Source: Eutreptiella sp. 'Long Island Sound 2002' (taxonomy: Eukaryota > Protista > Euglenida). Taken from it: a stretch of 64,000 nucleotides of DNA. Position 1 is the first letter of the stretch; the number at the start of each line of letters is the position of its first letter. The translations under genes and the position numbers were made by a program. Below the pieces are notes generated by a model. That model was not told the origin of the DNA. It searched no databases and worked only from the letters and a program-made list of their open reading frames with translations. This document shows, one piece after another, positions 32,901-61,069 of the stretch. Where the stretch lies: contig OZ038378.1 of assembly GCA_964036045.1 (NCBI GenBank), positions 84,940,001 through 85,004,000 of the forward strand, given 5' to 3'.

Positions 32901-35900
32901 CCGCCACACCCCTCCTCCGCACCTGAGCCTGAACGCGATGGGCTGGTGGAAGAAGAAATGGCAGCATCGGGGGAGTCCCCACCCCACAGCCCAGTGAAGC
33001 TCAGGGGTGCTCAGCCCCAGCCACAAGAGGCGGGCACGATCCAGGTCGGGTCCATGGGCTATGCAGATGACACGTATCCGCTGCGATCTGAGGGCCAATA
33101 CATGGCGCCGGTGATGCAGCTCACTGATGAGTGGCTGGCTCTCACCCTGCAAAAAGTGAACCCCAAGAAGTCACTGTCCATACAAGTACGACAATCCAAG
33201 GAAATTGCCCGCAAACACACGGTACTCCAAGGGATCTCACTCCCCCTCCAAGCTGAATTCCGCTCGCTAGGGGTGGGTATTCGTACCAGCCTGACCAGGG
33301 GGACTGGCCCGCTCCTGAAAAAGAGGACATCCATGTCCCCATGTCCAGGCATGCGCTCTCATACCTACAGCTCACAGGAGCTATCACTCCTGAGCGTGCG
33401 TCACGCATAGTGGTGGTAAGCACCCCAGAGGGGCAGCGCACCCCACTACCGACACGCAGCTCGGAGCAGCCTCCGCACGAAAAGGGACGCGACATCCCCC
33501 CGGGGATAGCAAGGATGTTGCAGCAGATCCGGATGCCCCCAGCAAGGCCACAACCGCTACAGCCCCGAAGGGAACCACGGCCCAACGAGCGGACTTCACG
33601 CACCGCCGTCCTGCCCACCGGCCCTCCGATGGGGTTCAACGTAACTAGCACCCCGTCTCCGCGGGTGCTGAGCAGGCCAGGGCAATTCTCGCCATCTCCG
33701 GCATGGTCGCCGGCGGTGACTTCCAGTTGGCACTCCGTGCGGCACGTGACCCCGGAGCATTGGTCGCCCGCATGCACACCAGGGGGGGGGTCTAACCGAC
33801 AGCAGGATTCACCTCACCTGCCCCCTGTCCTGCTGGCGCCCCTATTTGAGAGCGCAATGTCTACCCCGCGAAGGGACAGCACTCAGAGTGCGTCTGATGA
33901 GGACGTGCAACAGTATGCCGTCCGGTGTTCTACCCCCCCCGATCTGCCCCCCACCCTGCTGGCGCCACTTTTTGAGAGCGTGATGTCTGCCTCGCGAGCG
34001 GGCAGCACTCATTGTGAGTGCGATGAGGACATGGGTCAGTATGAAGTCCAGTACTCTACCCCACCCTCCGTGGGGGAGTGGCCCCCTAACCCCTTTACCT
34101 TTCCCTCTCTTCGCGGAGCGCGGCGTCTCTGCACGGAATTGCCTGGCATGGCCCGACAGGGCCAGGGATGGGTTCGTGACCCCCATGCACAACACTCCAC
34201 CATGCTGTACAGCATGCAGGAAGGTGCTCTGTCTTCCAACAGCGCGGAGGGGCTCATGAAGCATGGACGGGCCTCACGTGAGGCAACCTAAAGGACGGAG
34301 GGGGGAGCCTCTTGTCATACAGGGCGGCAGCTCTCCAGAAACCCGCGCGACTTGCCCCTTGGGTGAGTCTGGGGGCTGGAATGGGTAGAAGCCCCATGGG
34401 CTATTGCTCCTTAATATGATTTCCTTCCTACTGGAGCCCCTTTTGAACAGGGCGGGGGGGGGGGGGGGGGCTCGAGTGGGCTCCACCCCCCGCAAATGAC
34501 TTTTTCCCCAGCCTCAACTTTACAGCAAATACAAGAAACAATTGCTTGCCTTACGCTTGCTTTCGTATGTGGGTTACATTTTTTTTTGCACTGCACATAG
34601 GCCGGGGGGGGGGGGGATGGACTGGGCACGTTATGCAGAGCTCCCTCAACCCCACTTGCCCCAGGCGCTGTCTCCGGGGAGGTCGGCGTGCTGGACCTGG
34701 CCACTTATCACTACCGTGCGCTGCTGCGGACCCACACCGCGGATGTGGTGGCAGCAGCAGTGCACCCAACAAAGGCGGAAATGGTGACGGTTGCCAGGTA
34801 TGCCCTGTACAAGGAAAAACATGCTAACCTCGGAGAGTGGCGGGTGGGCCCAGGTGGACAGTCTGAAGCACAAAGTCAATACCATCCGGGGCCTCTGCTG
34901 AACGCGTCCTGTGCATGGGGTGCATCGCTCGGTGCCCATGTAATGTACAGTCTTTGTGGCCCATACCGAAGGTCAAACCAGCATGGTGCACCACAGTTCT
35001 CCAATCCATATCCCTTGGGTTTTTCTGTAATAGGGGGGCAGTGGGGCATAACATCCAACAGAAACTGTTGCGTGAGTCGCCTTGGGCGGTGAGTACACCA
35101 CGCAGGAGTGCTTACCAGAATCTGAGGCATTGGAAATTGCGCTCCTGCAAGTCTTATGGCCCACATACAGGCCAGTCATCGCTGAGCCATCGCACGCAGC
35201 CTTGTCCCTCAGGATTTGCCAGAAACAATAGTTGCAAGGATGCTGTGTTCCTTTTGTGGTGCTTTTTTTTGTTGCTTTGCACAGTACATGTCGTGCGGTT
35301 CTGGAGTTCGGGTAGTTCCTTGGAGTGGTTTGGTATCTTTCTGGGATAGATACTCAAAGCTCGCATGCCTGTCTGCGCGCACCATGTGGCCGCTTTGCCA
35401 TAGCCATAGCCCCCCCGTCTACTTTTTCTCAACAGGCAAACTGCCTGAAACTGCCGGGCACCACTGATGTTCAGCACTTGGTGATCCGCACCCCCTAGCC
35501 CTGGCCACATTCCGCACATCAGTGGTTTAGAGCACCCCCCACACTTCCCTGTGTTGGGAAAGACTTCGTGTGGAGCATGGACGCCCAGGGGCTGCGCCCC
35601 TGCGAGCAGAGGGACAACGGTCCCGCTCTCAATTGTCAAAAATGTGTATGCCCCCACTGTCCGTGGACAAGCAATGCAGACAATTTCTTCCTCGAAACCC
35701 GGACGAGTTCGTATACCCGGAAGTACCGGCACTGTTACTGATCTTTTACGGCACGCCCCCCACACTCCACCCACCCACCCACCCCTGGCATGTGCAACTC
35801 CGCTTCCCCTGAGCCAAACAAACGAATGACGTACTGAGGAGAACGGGGATGTGAGCCATCGCTTTGCGAAGACAACACCTGTCTGCATGGGGGATGACGG

Positions 35901-38900: not shown

Positions 38901-41900
38901 AGGGTGTGTGACTCCACGGGTCCTAGGATGCCAACTACCCGCCCCCCTCGTAATGGGGGGGGGGGGGGCTCCGGCCAACAGTTGTCAAAGGTACTGGCCT
39001 CAGGAGTCTATTTAGCGCCTATTGGTCCACAAGCACCAGAACCATATGTGTTCATGTACTCAGCGCTTGGAGCGCCAAATCGTGCAAGACAAGGCGCTTT
39101 CGAGGGTTCCTCCCCTGAGGCGCCCCTTTTACCCGTGTGTGTGGGGGGGGTCTCCCTAGGCAATATGGATAGGCCCCTTTTCTGGTTGGGGATATGTCTT
39201 AGTCCTAGGTCCTAACTCAACGATATGTCGAAGGTATTCAAGATGTGGCTGGGAATACCCAAGCCGATGATACCCTACCCTCTATTGGGGCAAGGGGCGG
39301 TGTAAATCGTCGGATCACACCCGGGCCACACACCCAACTGTTTGGAGGTGCCACCCCCCCCCCCCTCCCGGGCAAAAGCCCCACCCACACACCCCCATCG
39401 CCTGGTGGCCGTGGCGGGTCCTGTGAATGGCCAATTGAAGGCACCCGCCGGGCTTGGTTGTTCGCTGTGGTACACCTCTAGTCCATCCTGTAGTGGCAAG
39501 CGGAGGCGGTGGGGCGAACCTCACTGTCTGTGGGGAGCGTGTCCACAACAACTTACTTGCCATGACACCGTCGACACCTCCACACGGGTGGCGTTGTTGG
39601 GACTTGATGTTTGTTCTCTTCCTGTGTGCCCCGCCTTATAGACAGTGCCAATGTGTCGAGCCCGTGCAGACACATAGCACAGTGCCCACGGTGCCACTTG
39701 AGTGCAAGCCGACTCGCGGCATAGTGCCTATGGTGCCAGTGGCGTACAAACAACCACGCACCAAGATGCCTGAGGCAGCAGTGGAGTGCAAACAAACTCG
39801 CAGCACAGTGCCTGCGGTGCCGGTGAAGTGCAAACAAACGCGCAACGCAGTGCTTGAGGTGCAGGTGAAGTGCAAACATACCCTCAACACATTGCGTGAG
39901 GTGCTGGTGAAGTGCAAACAAACACGTGGCACGGTGCCCAAGGTACCCGTGAAGTGCAAACAAACACGAAACACTATGCTTGAGGTGCTTGTGAAGTGCA
40001 AACAAACATGCGGCACAATGCCTAAGGTGCCCGTGAAGTGCAAACAAATACACAGCACAGTGTGTGAGGTGCCGGTGAAGTGCAAACAAACATGTAGCAC
40101 AGCACCAGAGGTGCCGGTGAAGTGCAGACACACACACACACACAGCACGGTGTCTGAGGTGCCGGTGCAGTGTAGTCAAACACGCAGCATAGTGCCTAAG
40201 GTGCGAGTGAAGTGGCAACAAACACACGGCACAACGCCTTAGATGCTGGTGAAGTGCAACAAAATATGTAACACAAATACACCATTGCGCCTGTGCAACA
40301 TTTGGGGCGAAACACGACACATGGCACAGTGCCTAGTGCAATATCGCGGTGCAAGATGGGGCGTCACTTGATGCCTGCTGAGGGACACGGGGAACATGCT
40401 GTGAGTGTGTGTTCGGCACTAGCTCTGGGCCCTGCGGTGGCAATGCTAGTAGCAGTGTATGGGGCACCCGCTCTGGACCCTTGTGGAAGACAGCCTCCAT
40501 GCGGTGCATGTGTGGGCTGTGCCCCCTACGGCAGTGCTGGCATCCACTGAGGAGTTAGCGTGTGTGGTTGTGGGACACCGAGTCTGGGTCCCCGGGCGTG
40601 TGGGGGCCGTTTGCATGTCAGAGTGACGGGCCTAGTTGGCTGCGTGGTCTGCGACCCCGGGATGGCCCTCCTGAAAAGAGCGAAACTCCAATCCAATCCA
40701 ATTCAGACCCCCCCCCATCGCCCCTCCTAGATCCTCCCCTCCCAGAACCCCCCCAAGGAGGCCTCCGGCCGGCGGTTAGTTGGGTAGTTGGCGGCCGGAA
40801 CCGAGGAGTCCCCCCCCCCCACGTTCCAGAATGGCTGGCAACGGGGTGGGCGGGGCCGTTAGGAAGGGACCCATACACGCCACAGAATGGAGCAGTAATC
40901 CACAACGCAAGTGGAATCTCACCAGTTGTGCAAATTGGGGGGGGGGGGGGTTATACAGAGTAGAATTTCTGTGTCAGAAATTCTGTCCAAAATTTTGGTT
41001 CGCAATTTGTTCGGTGTTCTTAAGGATTTGCACAGGTATACGCAAGGCTGTGCTTTTGCTCACTTGTACCATGCCAAAGGATTTGGCTAGTTATAGTTGC
41101 TTTCCCAAGGAAGTCCCAGAAGTGCTGAAGTGGTCCTTCCTCATGTGTAGTATTACCGTGGCATTCAATGGGGTGCAGACAAGAGTGCTGGCCGATGCAC
41201 CCAGAAATTCCTCCGGGAAATAACAGCAACTGTCCACTGTTCTCGTGAGCAATTTCTACCAACCCTGCAGAATTAAGTCCCTCATTTTTTGAGAATTGGC
41301 ACGGGTTTTGTCGCGCCAGAATCCATGGATTCGGATTTTCCTCGACACGGATTCCCCCGCTCCCCCCAGTATGGAACCGTACGTCCTCATCCAGGGCCAT
41401 GGGGGAGGATGCCAGGCATGGGCACTATGTGTGCCTTTGGCGCTGATGCGTAACACTGATCTGATCTGACTCTGTGTCACAATCCCCACATCCGATGTGG
41501 TGAAGCGCGCCCTCCCAACGGCACAGGCATGGGAATGACGGAATGCAAAGCCCGTCAGTGCTGGCAGGGGGTGGCGTGCCCTAGCGAACAGCGGGACGGA
41601 CATTCCACTCCCCCCACAGTACTACCCCACAGCATCTGCCCTGCCCGGCCCTGCCCTGCCCTTGCCTTCCCCCGCTGTTGTGTACTGTGTTGTCCCTTGC
41701 TGCCCTACCTTGCGGTGCCGTGCCAGGCTACAAGGTCCCTCCCCCCACCGTGCTGAATCAGACAATCCTTGCCGCCCTCCACTTCCCCCCCCTTCCCCTA
41801 TCCACAATCAGGTTAGGGTTAGGATGGACCAATCAGGGACCGCCATACCTTTGGCACACGGGGCACGCACCATGAACGATACCACAGTCAAGAGGCCTGG

Positions 41901-42921: not shown

Positions 42922-43419
42922 GTAGCTATGTTGTACAGACACCCAGGGTTTGTGTGTGATGTAGCGGTTTGCCACCTTTGAAGCTTTTTGGAAAATTAGG
43001 TTACCCCCACCAACGCCTTGAAGCATGCCGCAGCATGCCGCAGCACAGCAAATTTTTCTGGGCAACGTTGGTGCCTGCCCCTGTGTGCACGCACAGACAC
43101 AGGGTTGGAGGAGGGGGTGGCTGCCGAGGCCAGAGTTGACTCCACCCCCCCCCCCCCCGCGCGGCAAGGGGGCCTCCAGCCAACAGCTAGGGTGGGGTGT
43201 AGTGTATTACCCGAGGGGTTGCCACCAGACATGTATTAGAACGGCAGTACACCGTAGGAGGAGGGGGGGTACCCCCCCCTGGACCCCCCTCCCCCCCCCC
43301 CCTAGACCCCCCTCCCCCCCCCCTCCCCCCCTTCTAATGTGTGATTGAACACCTGATCGGCCTGTTGCTGTCACTGTAAAGATGAGACGCGGTGTCAACT
43401 GACACTGTGCTCTCTGCAG

Positions 43420-43799
43420 GTCCTGCAGCCATCTTGTTTTTTCGGTGTGCTGACATTTTCAGTGGGAAGCGGCGCGAGACGGCCTACAATTTGGCGCAAA
43501 AGAGTGCTGCCTTTTTACAGAAGCGGGTCTTGGCATCGCAGCAGAGGTTATTGTGTAGAGCGGCAAAACGTGGGTCAGCGGACCATTGCCGCATTTTGCC
43601 TTACGAACTGCATGCTATACGACATATTGTGCAGCCCAACCTGTATGCTGTGATGCCACGCAACACTAATTTGTTGCAGCATGTGTGGACACCAGTGGCA
43701 CAGATTACTCCAGCTCTTCCGATGGACAGTGTGATACGTCTTCCGAGGAGAGTTCTGATGCCGAGTAACCCGGACCTGAATGACCCTGTGTGTACCTGA
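43420..43799 (+). CDS. Candidate further exon (PAAILFFRCADIFSGKRR...)
   Basis: tctctgcAG acceptor followed by a 126-codon open frame in phase 1; only loose WD-like resemblance. Confidence 0.25.
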
Positions 43800-44149
43800 G
43801 TGAACCTGAATGAACCTGTGTGTACCTGAGGGAACCTGGCGCTTGCATTGTATTGCAGATTCACCATCCAGAGACATGCGGGTGTGCTTTGCAAAGAAAA
43901 GGGTGAGCAGAAATGGACAGCCGAACCACCAGGACCCATTTTCAAAAATTGGTCCTGGTGGTCTCCCACCCCAGTACTAAGTGGTCGTGACTTGCCTTAA
44001 CCTCTGTAGTTGGGCAGGGTTACAGGCCCTTCTCACACTGGCAGACGTTTGTGAACACTGTGGTCAACAACCTATAGAGAACTTCTGGGAATTTTTTTTT
44101 GGATAACATGTCATGCTATGAACCTTGGGATGCATGAGGTAAGCAGTTC

Positions 44150-44222
44150 TGTGTGATAGGTGAGTGGTAGAACAGTGCGCTGCAGGTTTACAGGTAGCTG
44201 GTTCAAACCCCACCGGAGGCAT
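44150..44222 (+). pseudogene. tRNA-Cys(GCA)-derived pseudogene or SINE head
   Basis: GATAGGTGAGTGGTAGAACAGTGCGCTGCAGGTTTACAGGTAGCTGGTTCAAACCC follows the tRNA-Cys pattern (TAGCTCAGTGGTAGAGCA...CTGCAGA...AGGT...GGTTCAAATCC). Acceptor and anticodon stems are broken. Confidence 0.6.
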
Positions 44223-44534
44223 TCTTTTGCTGGTGATGATGTCCCACAGATTTTCGTTTTTTTGGGTGCCATTGCCATCTTCGGCAGAAAAAAAAAGATT
44301 TTTCCCAATTTTTTGCCGGACACCCTAGGAGGAGGGGTGTCCCAGCCAGACCCCCCTCCCCCCCCCCCCCTCCAGACCCCCCCCACCCCCCCCTCCCCCC
44401 CTTCTAATACATGGTTGGTTGCCACCCCGTGCCGGTATTGCTTACCGATGCCTAGTCCCACAACGTATGTGTCTTGACCATGCTGCGTCTCACCCACTTG
44501 GCTACGACCTTCCCCCTGCACCTAACCCCCCTCC

Positions 44535-47099: not shown

Positions 47100-47323
47100 G
47101 GCGAAGGAACCCAGGTTTCCCCATAAACCCCACTTTGGCTCCACTGCCCCTCTTTTTCACAGTGTGCGGTTTAATTTTCATTTTACTGATGGGGACCGAA
47201 GCTAGAGCCGCTGCCGCCACTCTGCTGGCCAGAGTAGGACTCTGTCTACTGTACCAGCGAGATCAAGGGCTCAGGCTTTCCCACGCGGCGATCGGCGGAA
47301 AAGGGTCCAAGTGCGCCACGTGA

Positions 47324-47671
47324 ACGCGGCACTTCGTCGACAACGAGCGGCTTAGTTCTGAGCATGGTGCGACGCCCCAGACCATCAACTCCGCCACACG
47401 GGAGGTGCTAACCACAGTGCCGACGGCGGACAAGGCCGATGTGGACGATGAGGTGGCCGCGGCTAAGAGGGCTCTCTTCATGTGGCGCGACGTACCGGGG
47501 AGTCCCCGCTGCGACATGCTGCTGAAGCTCGCAAACCTGCTGGCCGAGCACCAGCAACGGCTTGCGGAATGGGACACCGGGGACAATGGCACGCCCAAGG
47601 TCGTAGCACGGAGAGTGGGCGTGGACCTTGCGATCGAACTCTTCCGCTACTTCGTAGGCTGGGCGGCCAAG
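47324..47671 (+). pseudogene. Intronless aldehyde dehydrogenase N-terminal fragment (~116 aa)
   Basis: HFVDNE...TINSATREVLTTVPTADKADVDDEVAAAKRAL..W....GSPR..MLLKLANLLAEH...LAEWDTGDNG.P...DLAIELFRYFVGWAAK matches the class 1/2 ALDH N-terminus (LFINNE...TINPATGEVI...A...DVD.AV.AAR.A...R...L.KLA.L...LA..E..DNG.P...FRY.AGWA.K). Confidence 0.9.
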
Positions 47672-48222
47672 GACATACTGGTTGTGGAGGAGATCAAGCA
47701 CCTGATGCGATGGGTGTGGCACACTGAGAACACCTACGGTACAGGGGCTACCGCATGGGAATCAGCTATGGCCAACTTGAAAGAGCAGGATGACAAGCAC
47801 CTGATCTTCATCAGCGGGCCTTGCCCCTTAACACAATTGTCACTGGGTGGGATGGCGCCTTTGCTGCCCCCCCGCACGTCTTGGTCGAAGACAATGATTT
47901 CAATGCCTTGCCCAATGGCCCCAGCTGTCCCCGACATCCCGCTGACAGATTGGATCCCAACGCTGCCGCGACCAGTCCGGCCAGTGCTCCGGTGTTGACT
48001 ATAGGCACCATCGTCACGTTCACCCCTAAGGGAGTGGCGCCGTGTGCGCGTCAGCGCCGCCCTCTTGCACCCCGGCGCACGAAGCTCCGCCGCCTCTGCC
48101 TGCTCCGCAAGCGCCCCCACTTCGGCCACCTATGCCGGCACCAGTACCGCCCACCCATTCACCCATGCCGCCGCCGCTTACGCCTCCTCAGCATCGCCCA
48201 ACTCAGACCGCATACGAAGCGC

Positions 48223-48447
48223 TTTCCCGTGTTGGTGCGGGGCCCAGAGAAGACTGTGGCGCTGCACCTACTCCCCCATGAAAGCGTCTAGGGTGGGAAG
48301 TATATGATCCAGCGCAAGCTCAAAGTCCCTTGGAGACACCAGTGCATGCTGCAAGGCAACGTGCAGCAAGAGAACAGCCGCATCGTAGCCAATTACCCTT
48401 TGAACAGGAACAACACGATTACCTTTGTGCTCTCTATGTGTGGCCGA
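48223..48447 (+). pseudogene. Ubiquitin-like domain 1 (one internal TAG)
   Basis: FPVLVRGPEKTVALHLLPHESV*GGKYMIQRKLKVPWRHQCML...ENSRIVANYPLNRNNTITFVLSMCGR aligns end to end with ubiquitin. Confidence 0.7.
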
Positions 48448-49126
48448 ACCCCCGATGGCACCGAGTTCGCGCCTACGTGTATGCACGACGCACCCGAAAC
48501 GGTTGTCAACGGCGTTCCCGAGGCTGCCACGTACCTGGCTCTGTAGCAGGAGCGGTGCCACAGAGAAGCCTCACAAGCGCTACAAAAGTTCCTAGCACCG
48601 GCTCCAGGCACTTGCTTTGGAGGCCGAGACGCACCACCCAGCGGAGTTGCATGAGTGTGCTGCGACCTCAGAGGCGAAACTGCGCTACGCAACGCGTTGC
48701 AGCAACGACACCCAGTACAACCTCTGCGATGTCAGCGACCTACGGACGGCAATACAAGAGCTCGGCGGGTGCACGTGGGTTGAGGAGTCATGGAATGGCA
48801 CATTGAGGATCCGGCACCACCAGTGGATGAACGACATGCGGACGCGGCGATTGGGGCCACCCCCAACGCCGGGAGCGGCCCAGGCAGCGCTGCCGGTGGG
48901 GCCGGAGAACGCGCTCACGCCGGCAGCAAGTGCCCTGGTGAGCAGGGCGTAGTAGGATCTGCCGATGATGATGGATGTGGCAATCATGGACGGCGAGCCG
49001 GCGGACATCGGGCACACACCCTCCCACCACGGCCGCAACGATGGACATGAAGCAGCCACCGCGACATCCAGTACCCAGACGGGGGCAAAAGGCACGGCGA
49101 ACCATGGAACTGAACACGCCCCCGGG

Positions 49127-49359
49127 CACCAGCTCTTCGTGCGAGTGGAAACCGGGCGTACCATCACAGTTTGTGTCCGCTCCTCGGACGTTCGTGTACA
49201 CGACATCCAAGTGCAGATCCACAGCAAAGTCCGCGCCCCAGCCCATTGGCACAGGCTGGTTTTCGCGGGCAAGCAGCTGGCCCGCGCGGGCTACACCCTG
49301 GCGACTATGGCATCGGGGAGGGATCCACTCTAGAACTCCTCAGGCGCCCATGTGGCCGA
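49127..49359 (+). pseudogene. Ubiquitin-like domain 2 (one frameshift)
   Basis: HQLFVRVETGRTITVCVRSSDVRVHDIQVQIHSKVRAPAHWHRLVFAGKQL then, after a frameshift, DYGIGEGSTLELLRRPCGR. Confidence 0.85.
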
Positions 49360-49379
49360 GTGCTTGCGAAAGGCGACGC

Positions 49380-50630
49380 CACGAACGGGGATGCCACCAT
49401 GACGCCAGCGGACAGCGCCCATAACGTCGCCACAGCTGCCAACTCCTCCCTACTTGCATGGGCAAAATGGGTACAGGGCCCATACGGGGCCCTACTCAAG
49501 AGTGCAAGGACTGGACGAGTGGGAGCTCGGCTTCCTCGAGGCCCTCACAAAGCACGAGGTGCAAGCGGGGGCGGTGGGGGCCATGACGACACGGCCGGGC
49601 TTGGCCCTCGAGATGGAGGAGGCCACACGTGCCACGGCAGCATACAAAGGACATTGCCACCTACAGCCCGACTTCATCGCCGCGGTTTTCCGCCTCATGC
49701 CTAGCATGGCCACAAATGAGAGCACAGCAGCCCGGGGCCCAGGGGCGACGCCCGGACAGCCACACCTGACCGTGCTGGAATGGGCACGCGGGGTCGCTGG
49801 CCCGTACGCTGCCCTTGTGGGTCGCAGCACCTATGCACAGGACCTGGACAAGTGGGAGGTTGACTTCGAGGAGTTCCTCATGGAAATCGAGGCCACGACA
49901 CAGCAGCTCGGAGCACTCGTAGTGGCTGCGGGTCTGGACCTTGATAGCACATCGGCAATCCGTGCCCTGGGCGCTTACACCGCCCGCAAATGCCTCCGGC
50001 CCAACCTCCACGAGCTCCGCTTCATGGGCATCCTGACCACGGACGCAGCGGGCCCCACTATGGGCGACAACGCCACGAACCAAAGCCCGATGCGTGAATT
50101 CGTGGCGCTGCTATCGGCCCAGAAACTGGAGGTAGAGCAGATGCGCCAAACCCTCATCGCACCACTCACCCGAGCGGCGGTTGACCGCTTTCTCACGCAG
50201 GCCTTGCCGTATGCCTCGATGACCTCCCTCGCGGCCTGCGTGAAAGAACTATCCCACGAGGACCCAAGTGATTCTTTTGCCAAGCAGCCACTACCGTCCA
50301 CCGTGTGGCGCGTCCTCAATGAGGAACTCCGCGCCAAGAGGCAGGGTCGTCCGTCAGCCCCGGCACTGATAGCCCACCCCGGCCCACCGACACATGGCAC
50401 CCTTGCAGCCCCAGATGATGGCGACCGGATCGGCCACCATATGCTTCAACTGCCGCGGGCGGGGGAACATCGCGCGCGTGTGCCCCTGGAAGGCACCGGG
50501 GGGCCAAGTTCAGCAAATGGGGCCCCACACCCTGTCGGTAAATCACAACCACGCCTACGATATGAACGCACCACCGCCAGCCCCTTGCAACAAGTGCGGA
50601 CAGATGCATTGGGCCTAGTTCCCGTGCCTC
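49380..50630 (+). pseudogene. Gag-like region ending in two zinc-knuckle motifs
   Basis: CFNCRGRGNIARVC (50442-83; CX2CX4[H>N]X4C) and CNKCGQMHWA*FPC (50586-627). Confidence 0.65.
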
Positions 50631-50816
50631 CAACCCCAGTCAAGGGCAGTCACCACCCCCACCGCACACCAGCACTGCACCTCAAGCACACATGGGACAG
50701 ACTGGAGTGCGACGTTGCTGCAAGTCCTCTAGCAACACCAAGGGGGGCAACCACCCTCGGCCTGAACCGCCATCTCCCCAGCCCTCCTACCCCCCACTCT
50801 GCATCACCAAGCACTA

Positions 50817-51283
50817 GTGCATGACCAAGGGACGGCCACCGTGGCAGACGCGTGGGGCGCGTACCGCGAAGCACTCAGAGCACGTCTCCGCGTTAGCCTT
50901 ACAGACGCGGTGGTGTTCGCCGCAAGGCCCTTCGCCAAGGGCACACGGGACACATACCTATGCGCCGTACGAAACATCCTCATGGGCAACACGAACGACA
51001 CCGATTTGCAGCTGGCCATCGACGGCCGCCTCTTGCTGCTTGGACACCGAAAGAATAGCGGGTCAGTGGCGCGCTACACCGTCTCCGGATAACAGATGCT
51101 GGCAAAACCGCAACCCCTCCCGGAGTTCGTTACTGCGCGAATGTGGTTACAAGTCGGAGCCATCGACAAAGGCACAGCGCACCTAGCGGAACCCCGCGCT
51201 TGGGCAACAGGGCAGCACCTTGAGCGACTAGGAAAATGCAGGTACCATTGGGTTTGGGCCAGAAATTGCTTCGATGCGACTAC
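50817..51283 (+). pseudogene. Putative tyrosine recombinase N-terminal (core-binding) region
   Basis: AARPFAKGTRDTYLCAVR...LLLLG...SGSVARYTVSG*...LPEFV...WLQVGAIDKG...PRAWA resembles the A..T...Y and stacked-helix pattern preceding the catalytic domain of DIRS-order YRs. No catalytic residues are retained. Confidence 0.45.
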
Positions 51284-54200
51284 AGGAGTTCCACTTTCCA
51301 CCGCCCCTAGGCGGTGAGGCACTGCATTGCACGAGTTCCACTGCCCCCTGCCCCGAGGCAGTGTGGCAGTGCATTGCACGTTTTGCACTGCCCACTGCCC
51401 CCAGGCAGTGAGGTAGTGCATTGCGGGAGTTCCACTGCCCACTGCCCTTGAGCAATGTGGCAGTGCATGACAGGAGTTCCATTGTCCACTGCCCCCGGGC
51501 AGTGTGGCAGTGCATTACAACAATTCCGCTCTTTAGGCAGCAACCGCCTCCTAGGCAGGCATCCCCGTCCCCTCAGCTGATGGGCCCGCGCATTGCACGA
51601 GTTCCGCAGCCCGCTGCCCCCGGGCTCTGTGGCAGTGCACCACAGGAGTTGCATTGCCTACTGCCCCCCTGCAATGTGGCACTGCATTGCATGAGTTTCA
51701 CCAACCACTGCCGCCAGGCAGTGAGGCAGTGCCGTGCCGGAGTTCCATTGCCTGTCGCCCCCAGGCGGTGTGGCGGTGCATTGCACAGTTTCGATTGCCC
51801 AGTGCCCGCAGACAGTGGGGCAGTGCGTCGTACGAGTACCACTGCCCACGGACCCCGGGCGGTGAGGCAGTGCATTGCCGGAGTGCCACTGCCCACTGCC
51901 CCCATGCGGTGTGGCAATGCGTTGCATGAGTTCCACCGCCCACTGCCCCCATGCAGTGAGGCAGTGTATAGCAAGAGTTGCACTGCCCATTGCCCCTAGG
52001 CAGTGGGGCATTGCATTGCAAGAGTACCACAGCCCACAGCCCCCAGGCGGTGTGGCAGTGCGTTGCAGGGTTTCCACGGCTCACTGCCCCCATGCGGTGA
52101 GGCAGCGTACTGCGGGAGTTCCACTGCCCACTGCCCATAGACAATGAGGCATCGCATTGAGGAAGTTCCGCTGCCGGCCGCCCACAGCCGGTGTGACGGT
52201 GCTTTGCTGGAGTTCCACTGCCCACTACCCCCAGGCAGTGGGGCAGTGCGTTGCAAGGTTTCGACTGCCCACTGCAGCCATGCCGTAAGGCAGTGTATCT
52301 CAGGAGTCCCACTACCCACTGCCCCTAGGCAGTGAGGCAGCGCATTGCAGGAGTTCCACTGCCCATTGCCCGCAGGCAGCGGGGCAATGCGTTGCAAGGT
52401 TTCCACTGCCCACTGCCCCCATGCAGTCAGGCAGTGCATTGCAGGAGTTCCACTGCCCACTGCCTCCACGCAGTGTGGCAGTGCATTGCAGGAGTTCCAC
52501 TGCCCGGTGCCCCCGGGCTGCGGGGCAATGCGCTGCAACGTTTCCACTGCCCATCGCCCCCATGCAGTGAGTCAGTGCATTGCAGGATTTTCACTGCCCA
52601 CTGCCCCCAAACAACGTGGCAGTGCATTGCACGAGTTCTGCAGCCCATTGCCTCTAGGCATTGTGGCAGTGCAGTGGAGGAGTTCCATTGCCCACTGCCT
52701 CTAGGCAGTGTGGCAGTGCATTGCAGGAGTTCCACTGCCGACTGCCCCTGAGCAGTGTGGCAGTGCATGTTAGGAGTTCCACTGCCCACTGCCCCTAGGG
52801 AGTGTAGCAGCGCATTGCAAGATTTCCGCTCTTTAGGCAGCGACCGCCTCATGGGCAGGCTTCCCCGTCCTCCGAGCTGGTGGGCCCGCGCATTGCACGA
52901 GGTCCCCCTCAGGCACTGTGGCAGTGCTTTACAGGAGTTGCCCTGCCCATTGCCCCAATGCAGTGAGGCAGTGCATCGCACGAGTTCCACTTCCCACTTC
53001 CGCAGGCAGTGTGGCATCGCGTTGTAGGAGTTCCACTGCCCACTGCCCCCAAGCAGCGGGGCAGTGTGTTGCAGGGTTTCATTGCCCACTGTCCCCGTGC
53101 AGTAAGGCAGTGTATTTCAGGAGTTCCACTGCCCACTGCCCCCAGGCAGTGGGGCAGTGCATGGCAGGAGTTCCTTTGCCCACTGCCCATAGCTAGTGAG
53201 GCAATGCGTTGCGGCAGTTCAACTTCCCACTTCCCCCATGCAGTGAGACAGTGTGTTGCAGGAGTTCCGCTGCCCATTGCCCCGAGGCAGTGAGACATTG
53301 CATTGCACGGGTTCCACTGCCCACTACCCCCAAGCAATGAGGCAGTGCACTACAGGGGTTCCATTGCCCACTGCCCCCAGGCATTTGTGCAGTGCGTCGC
53401 AAGGTTTCCATTGCCCACTGCCCCCATGCATTGCAGAAGTGCAACTTCACACTGCCCCAAGGCAGTTAGGTAGTTCATTGCAGGAGTTCCATTGCCCACT
53501 TCCCCCAATCAGTGTGGCAGTGCATTGCAAGGGTTCCACCGCCCACTGCCGCTAGGTAGTGAGGCATTGCATTGCAGGAGTTGCACTGCCCATTGCCTCC
53601 GGCTGGTGAGGCATTGCATAGCAAGAGTTCCACTGTCCACTGCCCCAAGGCACTGTGGCGGTGCATTGCAGGAGTACCGCTATTTAGGCAATAACCGCTT
53701 CGCGACACAACTCCTCGTCCCCCCAGCTGGAGGCCCCCGCATAGCAAAAATTTTGCTGCCCACCATCCCCAAGCGGTGTGGCAATGCATTACAGGAGTTG
53801 CACTGCCCACTGCCCCTAGGCAGTAAGGCAGTGCGTTGTGGCAGTTCCACTGCCCACCGCCCCCGGGCGGTGGGGCACTGCGTTACATGAGTTGCACCGC
53901 CCTCCGCCCCCAGACGGTCAGGTAGTGCGCTGCAGGGATACTGCTCTTTAGGCAGCGACCGCCTCCTCAGCAAGACTCCCCGTGCCCGCAGATGGTGGGC
54001 CCCGCATTGCGAGAGTTCCGCTGCCCAACGACCCGGTTAGGCACGGTTAGGTCCAAACGGTTTGGAAATGCATCGCACGCTTTGAGCTGCCTTTTGCCCC
54101 CAGGTAGTACGGCAGTGCAGTGCATGAGGTCCAATGCCCACGGCCCCCAGGCAGTGAGGTAGTGTGTTCCATGAGTTCCACTGCCCCCTGCCCCCATACA

Positions 54201-57200
54201 TTGAGCCTGTGCGTTGCAAGAGTCCCACTGCCCACCGCCCCTGGTCAGTGAGGCAATTCGCTGCAGGGATACCGCTCTTTAGGCAGCGACCTCCTCCTGG
54301 GCAGGACTCCCTGTGCCCCCTGATTGGGGGCCCCGCATTGCAAGAGTTCCGTTGCCCAACACCCCGGTTAGACCCGGTTTGGCCTAGGTGGTGTGGCAGT
54401 GCATTGCACGAGTTGCAATGCCTACTTCCCCCAGGCAGTGAGGCCGTGTATTGTAAGAGTTGCACTGCCCACTGCCCTTGGGCAGTGAGGCAGTGCATGA
54501 CAAGAGTCCCACTGCTTACTGCCCCTGAGCAGGCCGGCGGTTCATGACAGGAGTTCCACTGCCCGCTGCCCCCAAGCAGTGACGTAGTGCATTGCAATAG
54601 TAGCCCTCCTTAGGCAGCGACCGCCTCCTGGGCACGACTCCCCGTCCCCCCAGCTGCTGGGCCCGCGCATTGCAGGAATTCCGCTGCCCACTGCCCCGGG
54701 GCAGTGTGGCAGTGCCTTACAAGAGTTTCCCTACCCATGGCCGCCAGGCGGTGTGGCACTGCATTCCATGAGTTGCACTTGCAACTGCCCCCATGCAGTG
54801 AGACAGTGCATTGCAAGAGTTCCACTGCCCAGTGCTCTGGGCAGTGTGGTAGTGCATTGCAAGAATTCCGTCTTTAGGTAGTGACCGCCTCCTAGGCAGG
54901 AGGTCCCGTCCCCCTCGCTAGTGGGCCCGCGCACAACAGGAATTCCGCTGCCCTGTGCCCCCATGCACTGTGGGAGTGCATTACAGCAGTTGCCCTGCCC
55001 ACTGCCCCAAGGCAGCGGGGCAGTTCATTGCACGAATTCCACAGCCCACTGCCCCTAGGCCTTTGGGCAATGCATGGCAGGAGTTCGACTGCCCACAGCC
55101 CCAGGCAGTGAGTTAAGTGCATTGTAGGAGTTCCACTGCCCACCCTCCCCAGAAAGCGTGGGAGTGCATTGCAGAAGCTCCACTTCCCAGTGCCTCCAGG
55201 CGCTGACGCAGTACATTGCAAGAGTTCCACTGCCCACCGCCCGCAAGAAATGAGCCAATATATTGCAGTAGTGGCACTGCCCACTGTGCCTAGGCATTGA
55301 GGCAGTAAATTGCAGGGGTTCCACTGCCCATAGCTCCCATGCAATGAGGCATTGCATTGCACGAGTTCCGCTGCCCACTGCCCCCGGGCAGTGTAGTACT
55401 GCATTGCGAGCGTTCCACTCTTTAGGCAGCGTCCGCCTCCTCGGCAGGACTCCCCTTCCCCCTAGCTGGTGGGCTGGAGCATTGCAGGAGGGCCACTACC
55501 TGTCGCTCCCAAGCGGTGGGGCAGTGCATTGCAGGAGTTGCAGTGCCCACCGCCCCTAGGCAGTGTGGCGGTGCATTGCAGGAGTTCCACTACCCACTGC
55601 CCTAGGGAGTCTGGCGATGCATTGCAGGTGTTGCACTGCCCACTGCCGCTAGGCAGTGAGTGCAGTGCATCGTAGGAGTTCCACTGCCCGCTGCCCTTAG
55701 GAAGTGAGGCAGTGCACTGCAGGAGTTCCAGTGGCCACTGCCTCTAGGTAGTGTGGCAGTGCATTGCCCCAGTTCCGCTAACCACTGTCCCAAGCAATGT
55801 GGTAGTGCAGTGCAAGAGTTCGACTGCCCATTGCCCCCATGCAGTGTGGCGGTGCATTGCAAGATTTCCACTTCCCTCTGCCCACTGCCGGTAGGCAGTG
55901 TGGCCGTTCATTGCAGAAGTTCCACTGCCCACTGCCCCCAGGCAGCGTGGTAGTGCAGTGCAAGATTTCTACTTCCCTCTGCCCCTAGGCGATGGGGCAG
56001 TGCATAGCAGGAGTTCCACTACCGGCTGTCCCCAGGCAGTGAGTGCAATGCATTGCAGGAGTTGCACTCCCCACTGCCCCCAAGTACTGTGGCAGTGCAT
56101 TGCAGAAGTTCCCTTTCCCACTGCCCCAAGGCAGTGAGGCAGTGCATTGCAGAAGTTCCACTACCCACTGCCCGCAGTCACTGTGGCAACACATTGCAAA
56201 GGTTCCAATGCCCACTGCCCCCAAGTAGTGAGGCATTGCATTACAGGGGTTGCACTGCCCGGTGCCCGGTGCCCGCGGGCAGTGAGGCAGTGCGTCGCAG
56301 GAGTTTCACTGCCCACTGACCCCAGGCGGCGTGGCAATGCATGGCAGAAGTTTCGTTTCCCGCTGCTCCTAGGCATTGAGGCAGTGCATTGCAAGAGTTG
56401 CAATGCCCACTGCCCCCAGCTGGTGATGCAGCGCAATGCAAGAGTTCCACTGCCCACTGCCCCCAGGCACCGTTGCAGTGCAATGCAGGAGTACCGCTAT
56501 TTAGGCAGCTACCGCCTCCGCGGCAAAACTCCTCGTTCCCACAACTAGTGGGCCCGTGCGTAGCAGGAGTTCCGCCGCCCACCATACCCAGGCGTTGTGG
56601 CGATGCATTACAGGAGTTGCACTGTCCAGTGCCCCAAGGCAGTAAGGCAGTGCGTTGTGGCAGTTCCACTGTTCAGCTTCCCCAGGCAATCGGGCAGTGC
56701 ATTGCATGAGTTCCACTGCCCACAGCCCCCAGGCGGTGAGGCAGTGCGTTCCATCATTTCCACTGCCCCCTGCCCCCATACAGTGAGGCAGTGCGTTGCA
56801 GATTTTCCACTGCCCACTGCCCCTTGGCAGTGAGGCAGTGCACTGCAGGGGTACCGCTCTTTAGGCACCGACCGCGTCCTGGGCAGAACTCCCCGTGCCC
56901 CCAGATAGTGGGCCGTGCATTGCAAGAGTTCCACTGCCCAAAGCCCCGGTTAGGCCTGGTTAGGCTTGGGCGGTGTGGCAGTGCATCGCACGAGTTGCAC
57001 TGCCCTCTGTCGCCGGGCAGTGAGGAAGTGCATGATAGGAGTCCCACTGCTTACTGCCCCTGAGCTGGGTGGCGGTTCATTGAAGGAGTTCCATTCCTCG
57101 CTACCCCCAGGCAGCGAGGCAGTGCTTTGCAAGAGTACCCATCCTTTGGCAGCGACCGCGTCCTGGGCAGGACTCCCCGTCCCCCCAGGTGGTGGGCCCG

Positions 57201-60200
57201 CGCATTGCAAGAGTTCTCTGCCCACTGCCCCCAAGCAGTGTGGCAGTGCATTACAGGAGTTGCCTTGCCCACGGCCGCCAGGCGGTGTGGCAGTGCATTG
57301 TAGGAGTGGCGCTTTCCAATGCCCCAAAGCAGTGGGGCAATGCATTGCAGGAGTTCCACTGTTGACGTTGACGCCCCCATGCAGTGAGACAGTGCATTGC
57401 ATGAGTTCCACTGCCCACTGCCTCCAGCTGCTAAGACAATTCATTGCAGGACTTCCAGTGCCCACTGCCCCCAGGTAGCGTGGCGGTGCATTGCAAGAGT
57501 ACCGCTCTTTGGGCAGCAACCGCCTCCACGGCAAAACTCCTCGTCCCGCCAAGAAGTGGGCCCGTGCATAGCAGGAGTTCCAATGCCTACCATCCCCAAG
57601 CGCTCTGGCAATGCATTACAAGAGTTGCACTGCCCACTGCCCACAGGCAATAAGGCAGTGCGTTGTAGCGGTTTCACCGCCCACCGCCCCCAGGCGGTGA
57701 GGCAGTGCGTTCCATCACTTCTACTGCCCCCTGCCCCCATACAGTGAGGCAATGCATTGTGAGGAGTTCCACTGCCCACTGCCCCTGGGTAGTGAGGCAG
57801 CGCACTGCAGGGATACCACTCTTTAGGCAGCGACCGCCTCTTGGGCAGGACTCCCGGTGCCCCAAGATGGTGGACCCCGCATTGCCAGAGTTCCACTGCC
57901 CAGCGCCCCGGTTAGGCCTGGTTAGGGGCAGGCGCTGTGGAACTGCATCAAAGGAGTTGCACTGCCTACTGCCCCCAGGCAGTGAGGCAATGTATTGCAG
58001 GAGTTGCATTGCCCATTGCCGACAGTCCGTGTGGCAGTACATTAGAGCAGTTCCACTTGCCACTGCCCCTGGGCATTGAGGTAGTGCATGACAGGAGTCC
58101 CACTGCTTACCGACCCTGAGCAGGGTGGGAGTTCATGACAGGAGTTCCACTGCGCGTTGCCCCCAGGCAGCGAGGCAGTGTATTGCTAGAGTACCCTTCC
58201 TTAGGCAGTGACCGCCTCCTGAGCACAACTCCCCGTCCCCCCAGCTGGTCGGCCCGTGCATTGGAGGAGTTCCACTGCCCACTGCCCCTGGGCACTGTGG
58301 CAGTGCATCACAGGAGTTGCCCTGCCCACGGCCGCCAGGCGGTGTGGCAGTGCATTGTAGGAATTGCACTGCCCACTGCCCCCATGCAGTGCGACAATGC
58401 ATTGCACTAGTTCCACTGCCCACTGCCCCCAGGCCGTCACACAGTGCATTGCATGAGTTCCACTGCCCACTGCCTTCAAGCAGTGTGGTAGTGCATTGCA
58501 AGAATTCCGCTCTTTAGGCGGCGACCGCCTCTTGGGCAGGGTTCCCCGCCCCCCCCTCTAGTGGGTCCGCGCATTGCAGGAGTTCCGTTGCGTAGCGCCC
58601 CAATGCGTTGTGGCAGTGCATTACAACAGTTGCCCTGCCCACTCCCCAAGGCAATGTGGCAGTGCATCGTAGGAGTTCGGGTGTCCTTTGGCCCCAAGCA
58701 GCGAGGGAATGCATCACAAGAGTTCCATTGCCCACCGCCGCAGATATTGTGGCAGCTCATTGCAGGAATTCCACTGCCCACTACCCCCAAGCGGTAGGGC
58801 ATTGCATTGCAGGATTTCCACTGCCCACTTGCCCCAGGCACTGGGGCAGTGCATAGCAGGACTTTGACTACCCGTTGCCCCCAGGCAGTGAGTGAAGTGC
58901 ATTGTAGGAGTTCCAGTGCCCACTGCCCGCTGGCGGCGTGGCAGTGCATTGCAGAAGCTCCACTTCCCACTACCCCCGGGCAGTGAGGCAGTGTATTGCA
59001 GGAGTGGCACTACCCACTGCCACCAGGCAGTGAGGCAGTGCGTGGAATGAGTTCCACGGCCCACTGCTACTGGGCCTTGAAGCGGTAAGTTGTAGGAGTT
59101 CCACTCCCCACAGCTTCCAAGCAGTGAGGCAGTGCAATGCAGGAGTTCCGCTGCCCACTGCCCCTGGGCACTGTGGTAGTGCATTGCGAAATTTCCACTC
59201 TTTAGGCAGCGACCGCCTCCTGGGCAAGACTCTGCTTCCCCCCAGCTGGTGGCCTGGCGCATGCCCGAGGTCCATTGCAGGACTTGCAGTGCCCACTGCC
59301 CCTGGGCAGTGTGGCGGTGCATTGCAGTAGTTCCACTGTCATTGCACTCCGGCGGTGCATTGCGGGTGTTGCAGTGCCTACTGCCCCCAGGCAGTGAGTG
59401 CAGTGCATTGCAGGAGTTCCACTGCCCACTGCCCTTAGGCAGTGAGTCTTAGGCAGTGAGGCAATGCATTGCAGGAGTTCCAGTGCCCACCGCCTCCAGG
59501 TAGTGTGCATATACGGCAAGAAGTTGCCTCCCCCCTCCCCGTACCTAGGAGGTACGGGGGGGGCGACGGGGGGGGTTCGGGGGGGAGGTACGGGGGGGTA
59601 CGGGTGGGAGGTACGGGGGGTACAAGGGGGGGGGGTACGGGGGGGAGGTACGGGGTGGTACGGGGGTTACGGGGGGGGTGCGGGCCGGAGGTATTGGGGG
59701 GGGACGGGGGGGATGTAAGGGGGGGGGGGTACGGGGGATTTGGCGGTTCACACACAAGGCGGTGCGCACAAAGGGCGCTGCATACACAAGGCGGCGCGCA
59801 CAAAACACCGTCTCTAGCCACCGCAAGAGTCTTGTTATTTAAGGGGCCACAGGCAAGGCGGTACACACGGAAGGCGGTACACACATAAGCCCGTGCACAC
59901 AAAAGGCGGCCTGTAGCCACCGCTAGAGTCTTGTTATTTAAGGGGCCACAGGCAAGGTAGTACACACGGAAGGCGGTACACACAGAGGGCGGTGCAACCA
60001 CAAGGCAGTGCACACAACACGCGGTCTATAGCCACTGCAGGCGTCTTGTAATCTAAGCGGAGATGCGGGGGCTGGCCCCCGCGTCGAGCGAAGCAAGGCG
60101 AACTACGGTTACGGGGGGGGGCGTTACGGGGGGGAGGTACATGGGGGGTACGGGGGGGCCGTACGGGGGGGTACGGGGGTGTGGTCCGGAGGGGGGGGGC

Positions 60201-60690
60201 GACTTCTTGCAGAATATCTACTGTGGCAGTGCATTGCGTGAGTTCCGCTACGCACTGCCCCCCGGCAGTGAGGCAGTGTCTTGTAGCAGTTCCACTGCCC
60301 ACTGCCCTTAGGAAGTGAGGCAGTGCATTGCAGGAGTTCCAATGCCCACTGCCCCCGGGCAATGAGGTAGTGCATTGCCGGAGGTCCACTCCCCACTGGC
60401 TCTAGGTAGTGTGGTAGGTCATTGCACGAAGTCCACTTCCCTGTGTCCCCAGGCAGTGGGGCAATGCATAGTAGGAGTTCCACTGCCGGCTGCCCCCAGG
60501 CAGTGACTGCAGTGCATTGCAAGAGTTGCACTCCCCACTGCCCCCAAGCACTGTTGCAGTGCATTGCAGAAGTTCCACTTCCCACTGCCCCAAGGCAGTG
60601 AGGGAGTGTGCATTGAAGGAGGTTCACTACCCAGTGCCCCCAATCAGTGTGGCAGTGACTTGCAGAGGTTCCACCGCCCACTGCCCCCTG
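51283..60690. repeat. ~8.7-kb satellite of 47-nt hairpin monomers with interspersed higher-order modules
   Basis: Consensus GCAGGAGTTCCACTGCCCACTGCCCCCAGGCAGTGTGGCAGTGCATT at 47-nt spacing (for example 52441 to 52488); interrupted at 59508-60218. Confidence 0.97.
59508..60218. mobile_element. MITE-like insertion in the satellite
   Basis: TIRs CATATACGGCAAGAAGTTGCCTCCCCCC and the reverse complement of GGGGGGGGCGACTTCTTGCAGAATATC. Flanks TAGTGTG (59501-07) and TACTGTG (60219-25). G-rich subterminal tracts and an internal ~115-nt triplicated module. Confidence 0.8.
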
Positions 60691-61069
60691 CGATTGCGGA
60701 AGGACCGTGATCGAGGAGGCAGCGCTTTGGCAGGGAAACCCGCTTTCAGGACTACCTCCGACACGGGCCTGAACTGGCCTAACACCGAGGACACCATCAG
60801 CGTTGGCCTCAATATTTTGGACCCCTCTTTAACCCCGGTGACCCGGCACCAGTCTAAAAATCCTCAAGATGGTAGCTGTAGGACAATCTGCCTACACGCA
60901 CTGCCAACCTTGAAGTCAGTTGTGATGCGTCGTGTTTGTCGTGCCAGTGCTCAACTCCTCTCCTGCCATCGTGGCCCCTGTCTCAACTCTACTCCACCCG
61001 TATGGTGCACTCTCTCTCTTGTCGTCGCCGTGTCTCCGAGGGCTGAGTGCCGCACCACATGTGCGTCCC

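Follow-up and report, generated by a model that had tools for sequence, protein, structure and literature searches.

A decayed tyrosine recombinase retroelement of a euglenid alga and its multi-copy family, in which ubiquitin is joined to gag and preceded by host-gene fragments

Positions 47102–51272 (+ strand) of the window, i.e., the whole 64,000-nucleotide stretch of contig OZ038378.1 analyzed in the present study, are occupied by a decayed, 3′-truncated copy of a multi-copy tyrosine recombinase (YR) retroelement of a euglenid alga. Read along the + strand, this copy consists of a 75-bp repeat, a 5′ fragment of an ALDH gene, a ubiquitin-like module (Ubl1), a leader, a second ubiquitin-like module (Ubl2), a gag-like region with two zinc knuckles, and the N-terminal half of a YR. 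The combination found in the family, a ubiquitin placed directly before gag and a stack of host-cDNA fragments placed before the ubiquitin, appears to be an undescribed architecture on the otherwise known plan of YR retrotransposons; in full-text literature searches, neither a fusion of ubiquitin to gag nor a 5′ stack of host cDNAs was found described for such elements. The interest lies in the family, the window copy itself being a relic.

The element family and its copy in the window

Twelve related loci (L001–L012), all from the ENA assembly ERZ25074135, were fetched; 11 of them hold a ubiquitin-gag copy, and L008 holds the reverse transcriptase (RT)/RNase H part and the 3′ repeats only. 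As far as the copies are complete, the tblastn maps of the 11 loci gave the order ubiquitin-gag-knuckles in the first open reading frame (ORF1), then YR, RT, and RNase H. The full element plan comprises the repeat A1, a variable host-cDNA cargo, a short leader, the ubiquitin-gag ORF1, an ORF2 with YR, linker, RT, and RNase H, and a terminal B1-A2-spacer-B2 structure. A first-pass annotation of the window had listed ALDH, Ubl1, Ubl2, gag, and a YR-like ORF in this order, and all of these pieces were recovered on the + strand with Pfam, PDB, and the relatives; its element start at 47324 was not borne out, as the left end lies at 47102, at repeat A1. The window copy is composed as follows.

47102–47177 (+): 5′ terminal repeat A1 ("R75"), left element end; single match of the nhmmer profile in the window
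47189–47680 (+): captured 5′ fragment of a host ALDH cDNA, ATG at 47189, stop at 47321 (Pfam, PDB, L011 copy)
47681–47947 (+): spacer of ~270 nt that follows the ALDH fragment and ends where family-conserved sequence starts; no match in Pfam or among the fetched loci
47948–48222 (+): basic, low-complexity 5′ region conserved in the family, ahead of Ubl1 (blastn and tblastn to L006)
48223–48447 (+): Ubl1, decayed ubiquitin-derived module, stop at 48289, C-terminal GG lost (homology to L006)
48608–49126 (+): leader/linker joining the two Ubl modules, interrupted by stops at 48950 and 48953 (tblastn match from residue 242 of the L006 ORF on)
49127–49359 (+): Ubl2, gag-proximal ubiquitin, frameshift near 49300 (Pfam ubiquitin, E 2.4e-6)
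49360–50762 (+): gag-like ORF1 body (16 relatives, alignments, zinc knuckles)
50763–50765 (+): natural stop codon of ORF1 (homologous to the ends of P0004, P0005, and P0007)
50817–51272 (+): start of ORF2, N-terminal (core-binding, SAM-like) half of the YR, residues 1–152, stop at 51090 (alignment to the L006 YR)
51279–60692: 47-bp satellite array, not part of the element (TRF and self-blastn)

Broken ORF pieces were searched separately or with X at the stops. The frame map against open relatives revealed at least four frameshifts and seven premature stops, so the window copy is dead. The stretch 47948–49110 is homologous to L006 8170–9219; within it, the region 47948–48222 matches L006 8170–8581 at 72% by blastn and residues 85–232 of the L006 ORF by tblastn, and the 3′ part of the leader is common to all sub-families (blastn of 48869–48934 to L001 9980–10045). 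No second copy of the element was found within the window by self-blastn, and Rfam and tRNA scans of the window gave no matches; the G+C content of this eukaryotic stretch is 50–65%.

The satellite junction cuts the element at recombinase residue 152. The 47-bp satellite was absent from L001–L007 (L008–L012 were not searched for it), and it is therefore regarded as truncating the element and not as belonging to it; its assignment to the element was considered and rejected, and a 46-bp array located after RNase H in L001 gave no match to it. The array extends over ~9.4 kb with higher-order periods of 94 and 141, its units match at 65–80%, and it is broken at 59548–60200 by G-run/TAC and 16-bp repeats.

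The 456-aa ORF at 49454–50821 has 16 relatives at 50–76% identity, several of them with PF00098 and PF00240. The gag body contains a ~95-aa helical domain in two tandem copies, along with a C-terminal domain and a pair of zinc knuckles. In the window, the knuckles at 50442–50483 (His changed to Asn) and 50586–50627 (with a stop at 50616) are read in another frame than the gag body, frameshifts lie near 49506–49640 and 50390, and there is an additional stop at 50730. The zf-CCHC domain (PF00098) was detected in 7 of the 11 ORF1 members, with HIV-1 NC as the best PDB match, and its CCHC knuckle suggests that ORF1 is gag-like, as is usual for the first ORF of YR retrotransposons. Because ORF1 of the relatives ends with a natural stop at the equivalent of window 50763, gag and YR were never one ORF. 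The earlier proposal that all pieces derive from a single long polyprotein thus stands only in part: Ubl1, linker, Ubl2, and gag share one frame in L006, as do cargo, ubiquitin, and gag in L003 and L011, but gag and YR are separate.

The YR pieces 50817–51089 and 51096–51314 align to the first ~150 residues of the relatives' ORF2, and the window piece is 79.6% identical to residues 1–152 of the L006 YR, with all catalytic residues missing. Accordingly, the ORF at 50817, previously suspected to be YR-like, equals the N-terminus of the verified family YR, of which only the non-catalytic half is kept in the window. For verification, a profile search of 1.84 billion representatives gave 410 YR relatives, almost all from the same assembly, and 32 of them were aligned. 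This alignment displays R, K, H, and Y at fully or almost fully conserved positions, together with the motifs LRVGE, WHxWRR, and GRW...Y; its profile matched Cre (5.6e-6), XerD (1e-4), and lambda integrase, with the catalytic motifs aligned to Cre R173, H289/R292, and W315/Y324. Additionally, Pfam Phage_integrase was found in 9 of the 32 homologues, and the AlphaFold (AF2) model of the YR (pLDDT 93.7) matched Cre over the full length (TM 0.64–0.69, E 6e-8) as well as XerA, lambda Int, IntI, and Tn1549 Int. By profile, Pfam on homologues, and fold, the N-terminal domain of the family ORF2 is a tyrosine recombinase in place of a DDE integrase. Pfam gave no matches with the gag, knuckle, and YR pieces of the window or with single YR ORFs of the family, a shallow 6-sequence YR profile gave none against PDB, and the AF2 model from 8 sequences (pLDDT 36) was unusable; the 32-sequence alignment mended this lack of depth.

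RVT_1 was detected in L001, L002, L005, L006, L010, and L011, with an RNase H region after the RT, so the relatives contain the RT and RNase H typical of YR retrotransposons; both are absent from the window copy owing to its truncation. A single open frame of L004 covers the complete YR, a proline-rich linker, and the beginning of the RT, which makes it probable that ORF2 encodes a YR-RT-RNase H polyprotein.

Eight copies have the 75-bp A repeat, in element orientation, at their 5′ side, and six have it 3′ of RNase H; the sequence upstream of the 5′ A copies was different every time. The 3′ A copies of L004 and L007 are embedded in a B1-A2-(~70 bp)-B2 structure (in L007, A 7640–7708 matches 18602–18672 and B 18516–18605 matches 18740–18829; in L004, B 15222–15316 matches 15448–15540), a split direct repeat layout reported for Ngaro, PAT, and VIPER (PMC6681497). 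Two other identities of the A repeat were tried: an RNA structure or ribozyme comparable to Pr77 of L1Tc was rejected, no covariation being present, and the similarity of its 3′ end to a relic spliced leader was weak and not significant. In L008 (14628–15773), a 5′-type A repeat, ~1 kb of unique sequence, and a 3′-type A repeat with the usual downstream sequence may constitute a short non-autonomous derivative (A-cargo-B1-A2-B2).

A distant second family, with 25–38% protein identity and the same order but without ubiquitin, is present in L002, L003, L009, and L011. Its near-intact 5.1-kb copy at L002:611–5700 contains A1 (611–754), a gag ATG at 758, YR, RT, RNase H, B1 (5277–5382), A2 (5381–5527), and B2 (5595–5700); the repeats are 97–100% identical, and the copy may be recently active. 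In this one end-mapped copy, the gag ATG follows A1 by 4 nt, with neither ubiquitin nor cargo. As a separate observation on the recombinases, the second catalytic arginine of the H-x-x-R box is K or A in the main-family ORF2 (WHPWKR, WHPWAR; e.g., L004:12718–13560), the residue after it being an invariant R, and the sister family has the canonical WHAWRR.

A euglenid-like host is indicated by the best match of the LHC cargo and by a spliced leader of the Euglena type. The LHC cargo of L002 best matched chain 9vfj_2 (E 8.5e-97), which is LHCI-2 of Euglena gracilis (PMC12577709). The spliced leader at L006:445–495 (− strand) has one mismatch and one extra T and is followed 12 nt later by an ATG; this stretch resembles a trans-spliced cDNA that was retroposed, or else a locus related to the spliced leader. 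A dinoflagellate host was considered and rejected, since the spliced leader of dinoflagellates was searched for and was absent.

Ubiquitin and host cargo upstream of gag

The window segment 48965–49330 matches Pfam ubiquitin (Ubl2); its RLRGG is decayed, and the Met after it is Val. In the intact ORF1s (P0002, P0004, P0007, P0015, P0003, and P0008), RLRGG is followed directly by the gag Met-Pro-Ala-Lys (MPAK). The family ubiquitin aligns with ubiquitin residues 1–76 (~1e-11 to mono-ubiquitin, ~40% identity), its RLRGG-M junction matches the polyubiquitin junction, and the best PDB matches are natural ubiquitin-fusion proteins. The predicted ORF1 product thus has the features of a ubiquitin-fusion precursor, i.e., a ubiquitin sequence, an RLRGG end, and direct joining to the downstream protein.

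The first-pass annotation had allowed that other copies might lack the Ubl and ALDH parts. The gag-proximal ubiquitin was, however, kept in 12 of the 12 compared copies retaining the ORF1 5′ region, and it was found in every sub-family, down to ~50% protein identity (L009). Between diverged copies, dN/dS (the ratio of nonsynonymous to synonymous substitution rates) was 0.24–0.49 for this ubiquitin and 0.06–0.19 for gag. Both are therefore constrained by purifying selection, in clear contrast with the regions upstream.

Two ubiquitins were present only in the sub-lineage of the window, L005, and L006, and L001, L002, L003, L004, and L011 have one; the earlier claim of two Ubl domains in one polyprotein is right for this sub-lineage, most copies having a single ubiquitin. 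In L006, a 637-aa open frame covers a basic stretch, Ubl1 (ending in RVGG), a ~190-aa linker, Ubl2, and the gag start, and contains two ubiquitin stretches according to Pfam (E 2.5e-11). The L006 Ubl1 copy (8438–8668) alone matches mono-ubiquitin in PDB (~6e-7), and the window Ubl1, which is in pieces, gave no Pfam match. The dN/dS values of 0.68 for Ubl1 (window versus L006), ~0.7 for the stretch before it, and ~0.85 for the leader/linker (range 0.6–1.5) mean that these parts behave like cargo and not like a working module, and Ubl1 looks like older cargo.

As for the cargo proper, window 47324–47995 matches Pfam Aldedh (E 1.8e-18, profile positions 7–106), and the window ALDH also matches PDB ALDHs (E 3.6e-16). 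The fragment starts with the ATG at 47189, 11 nt past A1, continues through a presequence-like N-terminus into the ALDH domain, and ends near 47680. It is not private to the window, because the same fragment occurs at a different locus, in L011 (8502–8687; 70.7% identity, E 3e-22), where it is buried between LHC units, and the divergence between the two ALDH fragments is similar to that of the element bodies. At least six different host-gene 5′ fragments (ALDH, LHC, ADH, aspartate-kinase-like, MACPF, and GAPDH) were found between A1 and ubiquitin, all on the element strand and with the cargo ATG 1–11 nt after A. The recruitment of Ubl modules and host cargo was thus correctly foreseen as a family trait, with ubiquitin in all sub-families and ALDH as one cargo among several. 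The cargo located after A1 is distributed as follows.

Window: ALDH
L005: ADH_N
L006: AA_kinase, then ADH_N
L003: MACPF, GON, LHC, GAPDH-N (Gp_dh_N), LHC
L001, L002, L011, L012: LHC
L007: none assigned by Pfam

L005 and L006, located on separate contigs and flanked by unlike sequences, have a common ADH 3′ junction; in L006, the AA_kinase 5′ fragment adjoins A and replaces ADH residues 1–31. This shared junction indicates that cargo is inherited through transposition and that new cargo enters at the A junction. Internal extra copies of A bracket cargo in L001 (at 8216 and 9513) and in L011 (at 7711 and 9204).

Rearrangements were also observed in this region. An inverted LHC cassette lies between two A repeats of opposite orientation in L012 (7418–8318), as if formed by site-specific recombination at A, and a 1.5-kb inversion in the 5′ cargo/leader region of L005 (7869–9457) reverses the Ubl1-leader block. 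The long ADH_N ORF of L005 was rejected as such, since its residues 122–235 are antisense of the inverted leader and not ADH.

The dN/dS of the cargo is 0.5–1.6, i.e., near neutral. At the same time, P0007 (L003) is an uninterrupted 700-aa LHC-ubiquitin-gag protein, and the frame starting from the first ATG after A in L011 runs for 1190 codons through LHC, ALDH, LHC, ubiquitin, and gag with a single stop. The 631 cargo codons of the latter contain no stops against 4–27 in the other five frames, and none of 5000 shuffles was stop-free. The frame linking cargo to ubiquitin-gag can thus be preserved for hundreds of codons, although the encoded cargo sequence drifts.

Proposed mechanism and alternative explanations

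Taken as a whole, the sequences make it likely, in our judgment, that elements of this family are translated as cargo-ubiquitin-gag, free their gag by cleavage, capture cargo at the 5′ end, and integrate by means of the YR. Ribosomes would start at the first AUG, which is that of the cargo, and yield a cargo-ubiquitin-gag protein, and host deubiquitinases would cut it after GG, by analogy with polyubiquitin and the ubiquitin-ribosomal fusions, freeing gag. Authentic gag would be released whatever lies upstream, the ubiquitin acting as an insulator, and in-frame 5′ accretion would consequently be harmless. The sister copy in L002, with neither ubiquitin nor cargo, fits the insulator view. Both the gag-proximal ubiquitin, located right before the gag Met, and Ubl1 probably entered as cargo.

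For the capture itself, the RT would probably leave the element RNA near its 5′ end for a host mRNA and copy the latter as far as the mRNA 5′ end; such template switching is suggested by the mRNA-like 5′ ends and by stacking next to A, new cargo being added next to A1 and ahead of the older cargo. Integration would proceed via circular DNA and the YR, as in DIRS, Ngaro, and VIPER. Both the cleavage after GG and this route of capture are what we infer from the arrangement of the copies.

The most serious alternative concerns only the capture step: cargo may have been acquired at the DNA level, by the element recombinase or by ectopic recombination at A, in an integron-like manner with A as the attachment site. 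The internal A copies bracketing cargo in L001 and L011, the inverted A-LHC cassette of L012, and the L005 inversion are all in line with this possibility and fit DNA-level recombination no worse than template switching; moreover, A shows high conservation over its first 40 nt without RNA covariation, as expected for a DNA/protein-binding site, and the newest cargo adjoins A. However, the cargo is continuous coding sequence from the start codon with a leader of 1–11 nt, which points to processed mRNA, and there is no A copy between the two parts at the AA_kinase-ADH junction of L006. We regard DNA-level capture as possible but rather unlikely.

A second alternative accepts the ubiquitin as functional but leaves it on gag as a permanent N-terminal tag, which would recruit trafficking or budding factors or direct gag to the proteasome via ubiquitin-fusion degradation; stability and proteasome targeting had already been raised in the first-pass annotation. 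Purifying selection on the module could be explained by any function, and several surface residues differ from those of ubiquitin. At the same time, the exact RLRGG and the next Met, which are needless for an uncleaved tag, are kept in intact copies and form the junction of natural cleaved precursors, and a tag would leave unexplained the tolerance for any cargo upstream and the absence of cargo from the ubiquitin-less sister family, as seen in its one end-mapped copy. This explanation seems improbable to us.

Still less credible is the idea that the whole region upstream of gag, along with the gag-proximal ubiquitin, was passively left behind by careless reverse transcription and plays no part in the life cycle of the element. 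It agrees with the near-neutral dN/dS (0.5–1.6) of cargo, Ubl1, and leader and with the decay of most copies, but not with a ubiquitin that is maintained in all sub-families to ~50% protein identity (L009) at a dN/dS of 0.24–0.49 with a preserved RLRGG-Met junction, nor with the stop-free, in-frame 631-codon cargo of L011. Finally, chance juxtaposition of unrelated insertions, or landing in an ALDH gene with Ubl pieces from host genes, might be imagined for a single copy in a repeat-rich region of the window, but it can practically be dismissed given the same order at 11 other loci on different contigs, the terminal repeat upstream of cargo in 8 copies, and ALDH and ADH junctions common to different loci.

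Several points nevertheless weigh against the cleavage and template-switching scheme. Captured mRNAs should carry the 26-nt spliced leader, and none was seen at the junction; the LHC cargo starts within the usual polyprotein and not at the true mRNA 5′ end. In most copies (L006, the window, and the upstream blocks of L003), the cargo is out of frame with ubiquitin-gag, these copies being decayed. Several residues on the ubiquitin surface are altered relative to ubiquitin, so recognition by deubiquitinases is not guaranteed. In the dN/dS comparisons, many dS values are saturated and the pairs are not independent of each other, and all relatives derive from the single assembly named above.

A wider view can be put forward more tentatively, as one that we hold with greater doubt than conviction. 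The ubiquitin may be an evolved insulator, and the family may capture host mRNA 5′ ends one after another at a single junction, where they are translated in frame, working as an exon-shuffling engine that makes fusions of host N-termini with ubiquitin; the captured start codons, leaders, or targeting peptides could be used by the element for its own expression, and VIPER-type elements could be ancestral to Euglenozoa. The ordered in-frame stack records capture events and would make split-direct-repeat replication testable, as regards both the RNA start and the rebuilding of the ends. Chimeric genes might also arise from the family, in a genome in which nearly all mRNAs are trans-spliced.

Neighboring elements and comparison with known systems

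Three further features were observed in the window. An open 1014-aa ORF at 30366–33410 (+), with RVT_1 (E 2.6e-9) and a YADD-type motif and with a 316-aa ORF overlapping its end, looks like a non-LTR retrotransposon similar to long interspersed nuclear elements, possibly an intact one. At 43215–44428, inverted repeats of 30 nt with 83% complementarity and a separation of 1154 nt, both beside long C-rich runs, possibly delimit a small fold-back element or one like a miniature inverted-repeat transposable element. A 42/90-bp tandem repeat at 40000–40263 lies inside long overlapping ORFs on both strands.

Among known retroelements, the family apparently comes closest in layout to VIPER/TATE. The order of a gag-like region, YR, and RT/RNase H was found wherever a copy keeps all four, in the sister family too, which upholds the earlier suggestion of a VIPER/TATE-like order, as the RT and RNase H come after the YR in the relatives. 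Other likenesses to VIPER are the CX2CX4HX4C gag knuckle, the A1 ... B1-A2-B2 split direct repeats (PMC6681497), and a host from the phylum Euglenozoa; the repeats, with a spacer of ~70 bp between A2 and B2, were established in L007, L004, and the sister copy of L002. VIPER has been reported only from kinetoplastids (PMC3783388, PMC6681497), whereas the host here is a euglenid; other differences are that YR and RT are apparently in one ORF, that gag carries ubiquitin, and that host-cDNA cargo follows A1. The likeness to VIPER is one of layout, drawn from order and repeats. If correct, it would extend VIPER-type elements from kinetoplastids to euglenids and would bear on the origin and age of a poorly understood class.

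With Ngaro, PAT, and DIRS1, the family has in common the replacement of the integrase by a YR and the presence of RT/RNase H, and no protease was seen here. Split direct repeats are shared with Ngaro and PAT; however, RT/RNase H precedes YR in Ngaro, whereas YR comes first in the present family, so the repeats fit Ngaro and the order does not. The terminal repeats of DIRS1 are inverted and accompanied by an internal complementary region, its RT/RNase H lies before the YR, and a methyltransferase is often present; none of these features was seen here: the repeats are direct, and YR precedes RT, so the family is not DIRS1-like. A 2026 preprint describes diverse DIRS-like elements in Euglena gracilis and does not mention ubiquitin.

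The carriage and copying of host coding fragments are also known from LINE 5′ transduction and chimeric retrocopies, retroviruses, Pack-MULEs, and Helitrons. In comparison with these, capture in the present family is characterized by one fixed junction, mRNA 5′ ends, sense orientation, and a stack ordered by arrival and in frame with the ORF.

As to the ubiquitin, the natural precursors (polyubiquitin, Ub-eL40, and Ub-eS31) likewise have a full-length ubiquitin, an RLRGG end, and head-to-tail joining; the family differs from them in its ~40% identity to ubiquitin, in having gag as the partner, and in the N-terminal extensions before ubiquitin. The closest functional analogue is found in cytopathic pestiviruses (bovine viral diarrhea virus (BVDV) Osloss and others), in which host ubiquitin from cellular RNA has been placed before NS3, as it is before gag here (PMC2850149; PMC13517609). 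This is a likeness in working and not a family relationship: BVDV is an RNA virus of cattle in which such recombination is sporadic and a dead end for the virus, whereas the ubiquitin here is fixed and selected and is accompanied by serial capture of host fragments. The family would thus be a fixed transposable-element case of the ubiquitin-fusion trick, which is otherwise seen in cellular precursors and in sporadic pestivirus recombinants.

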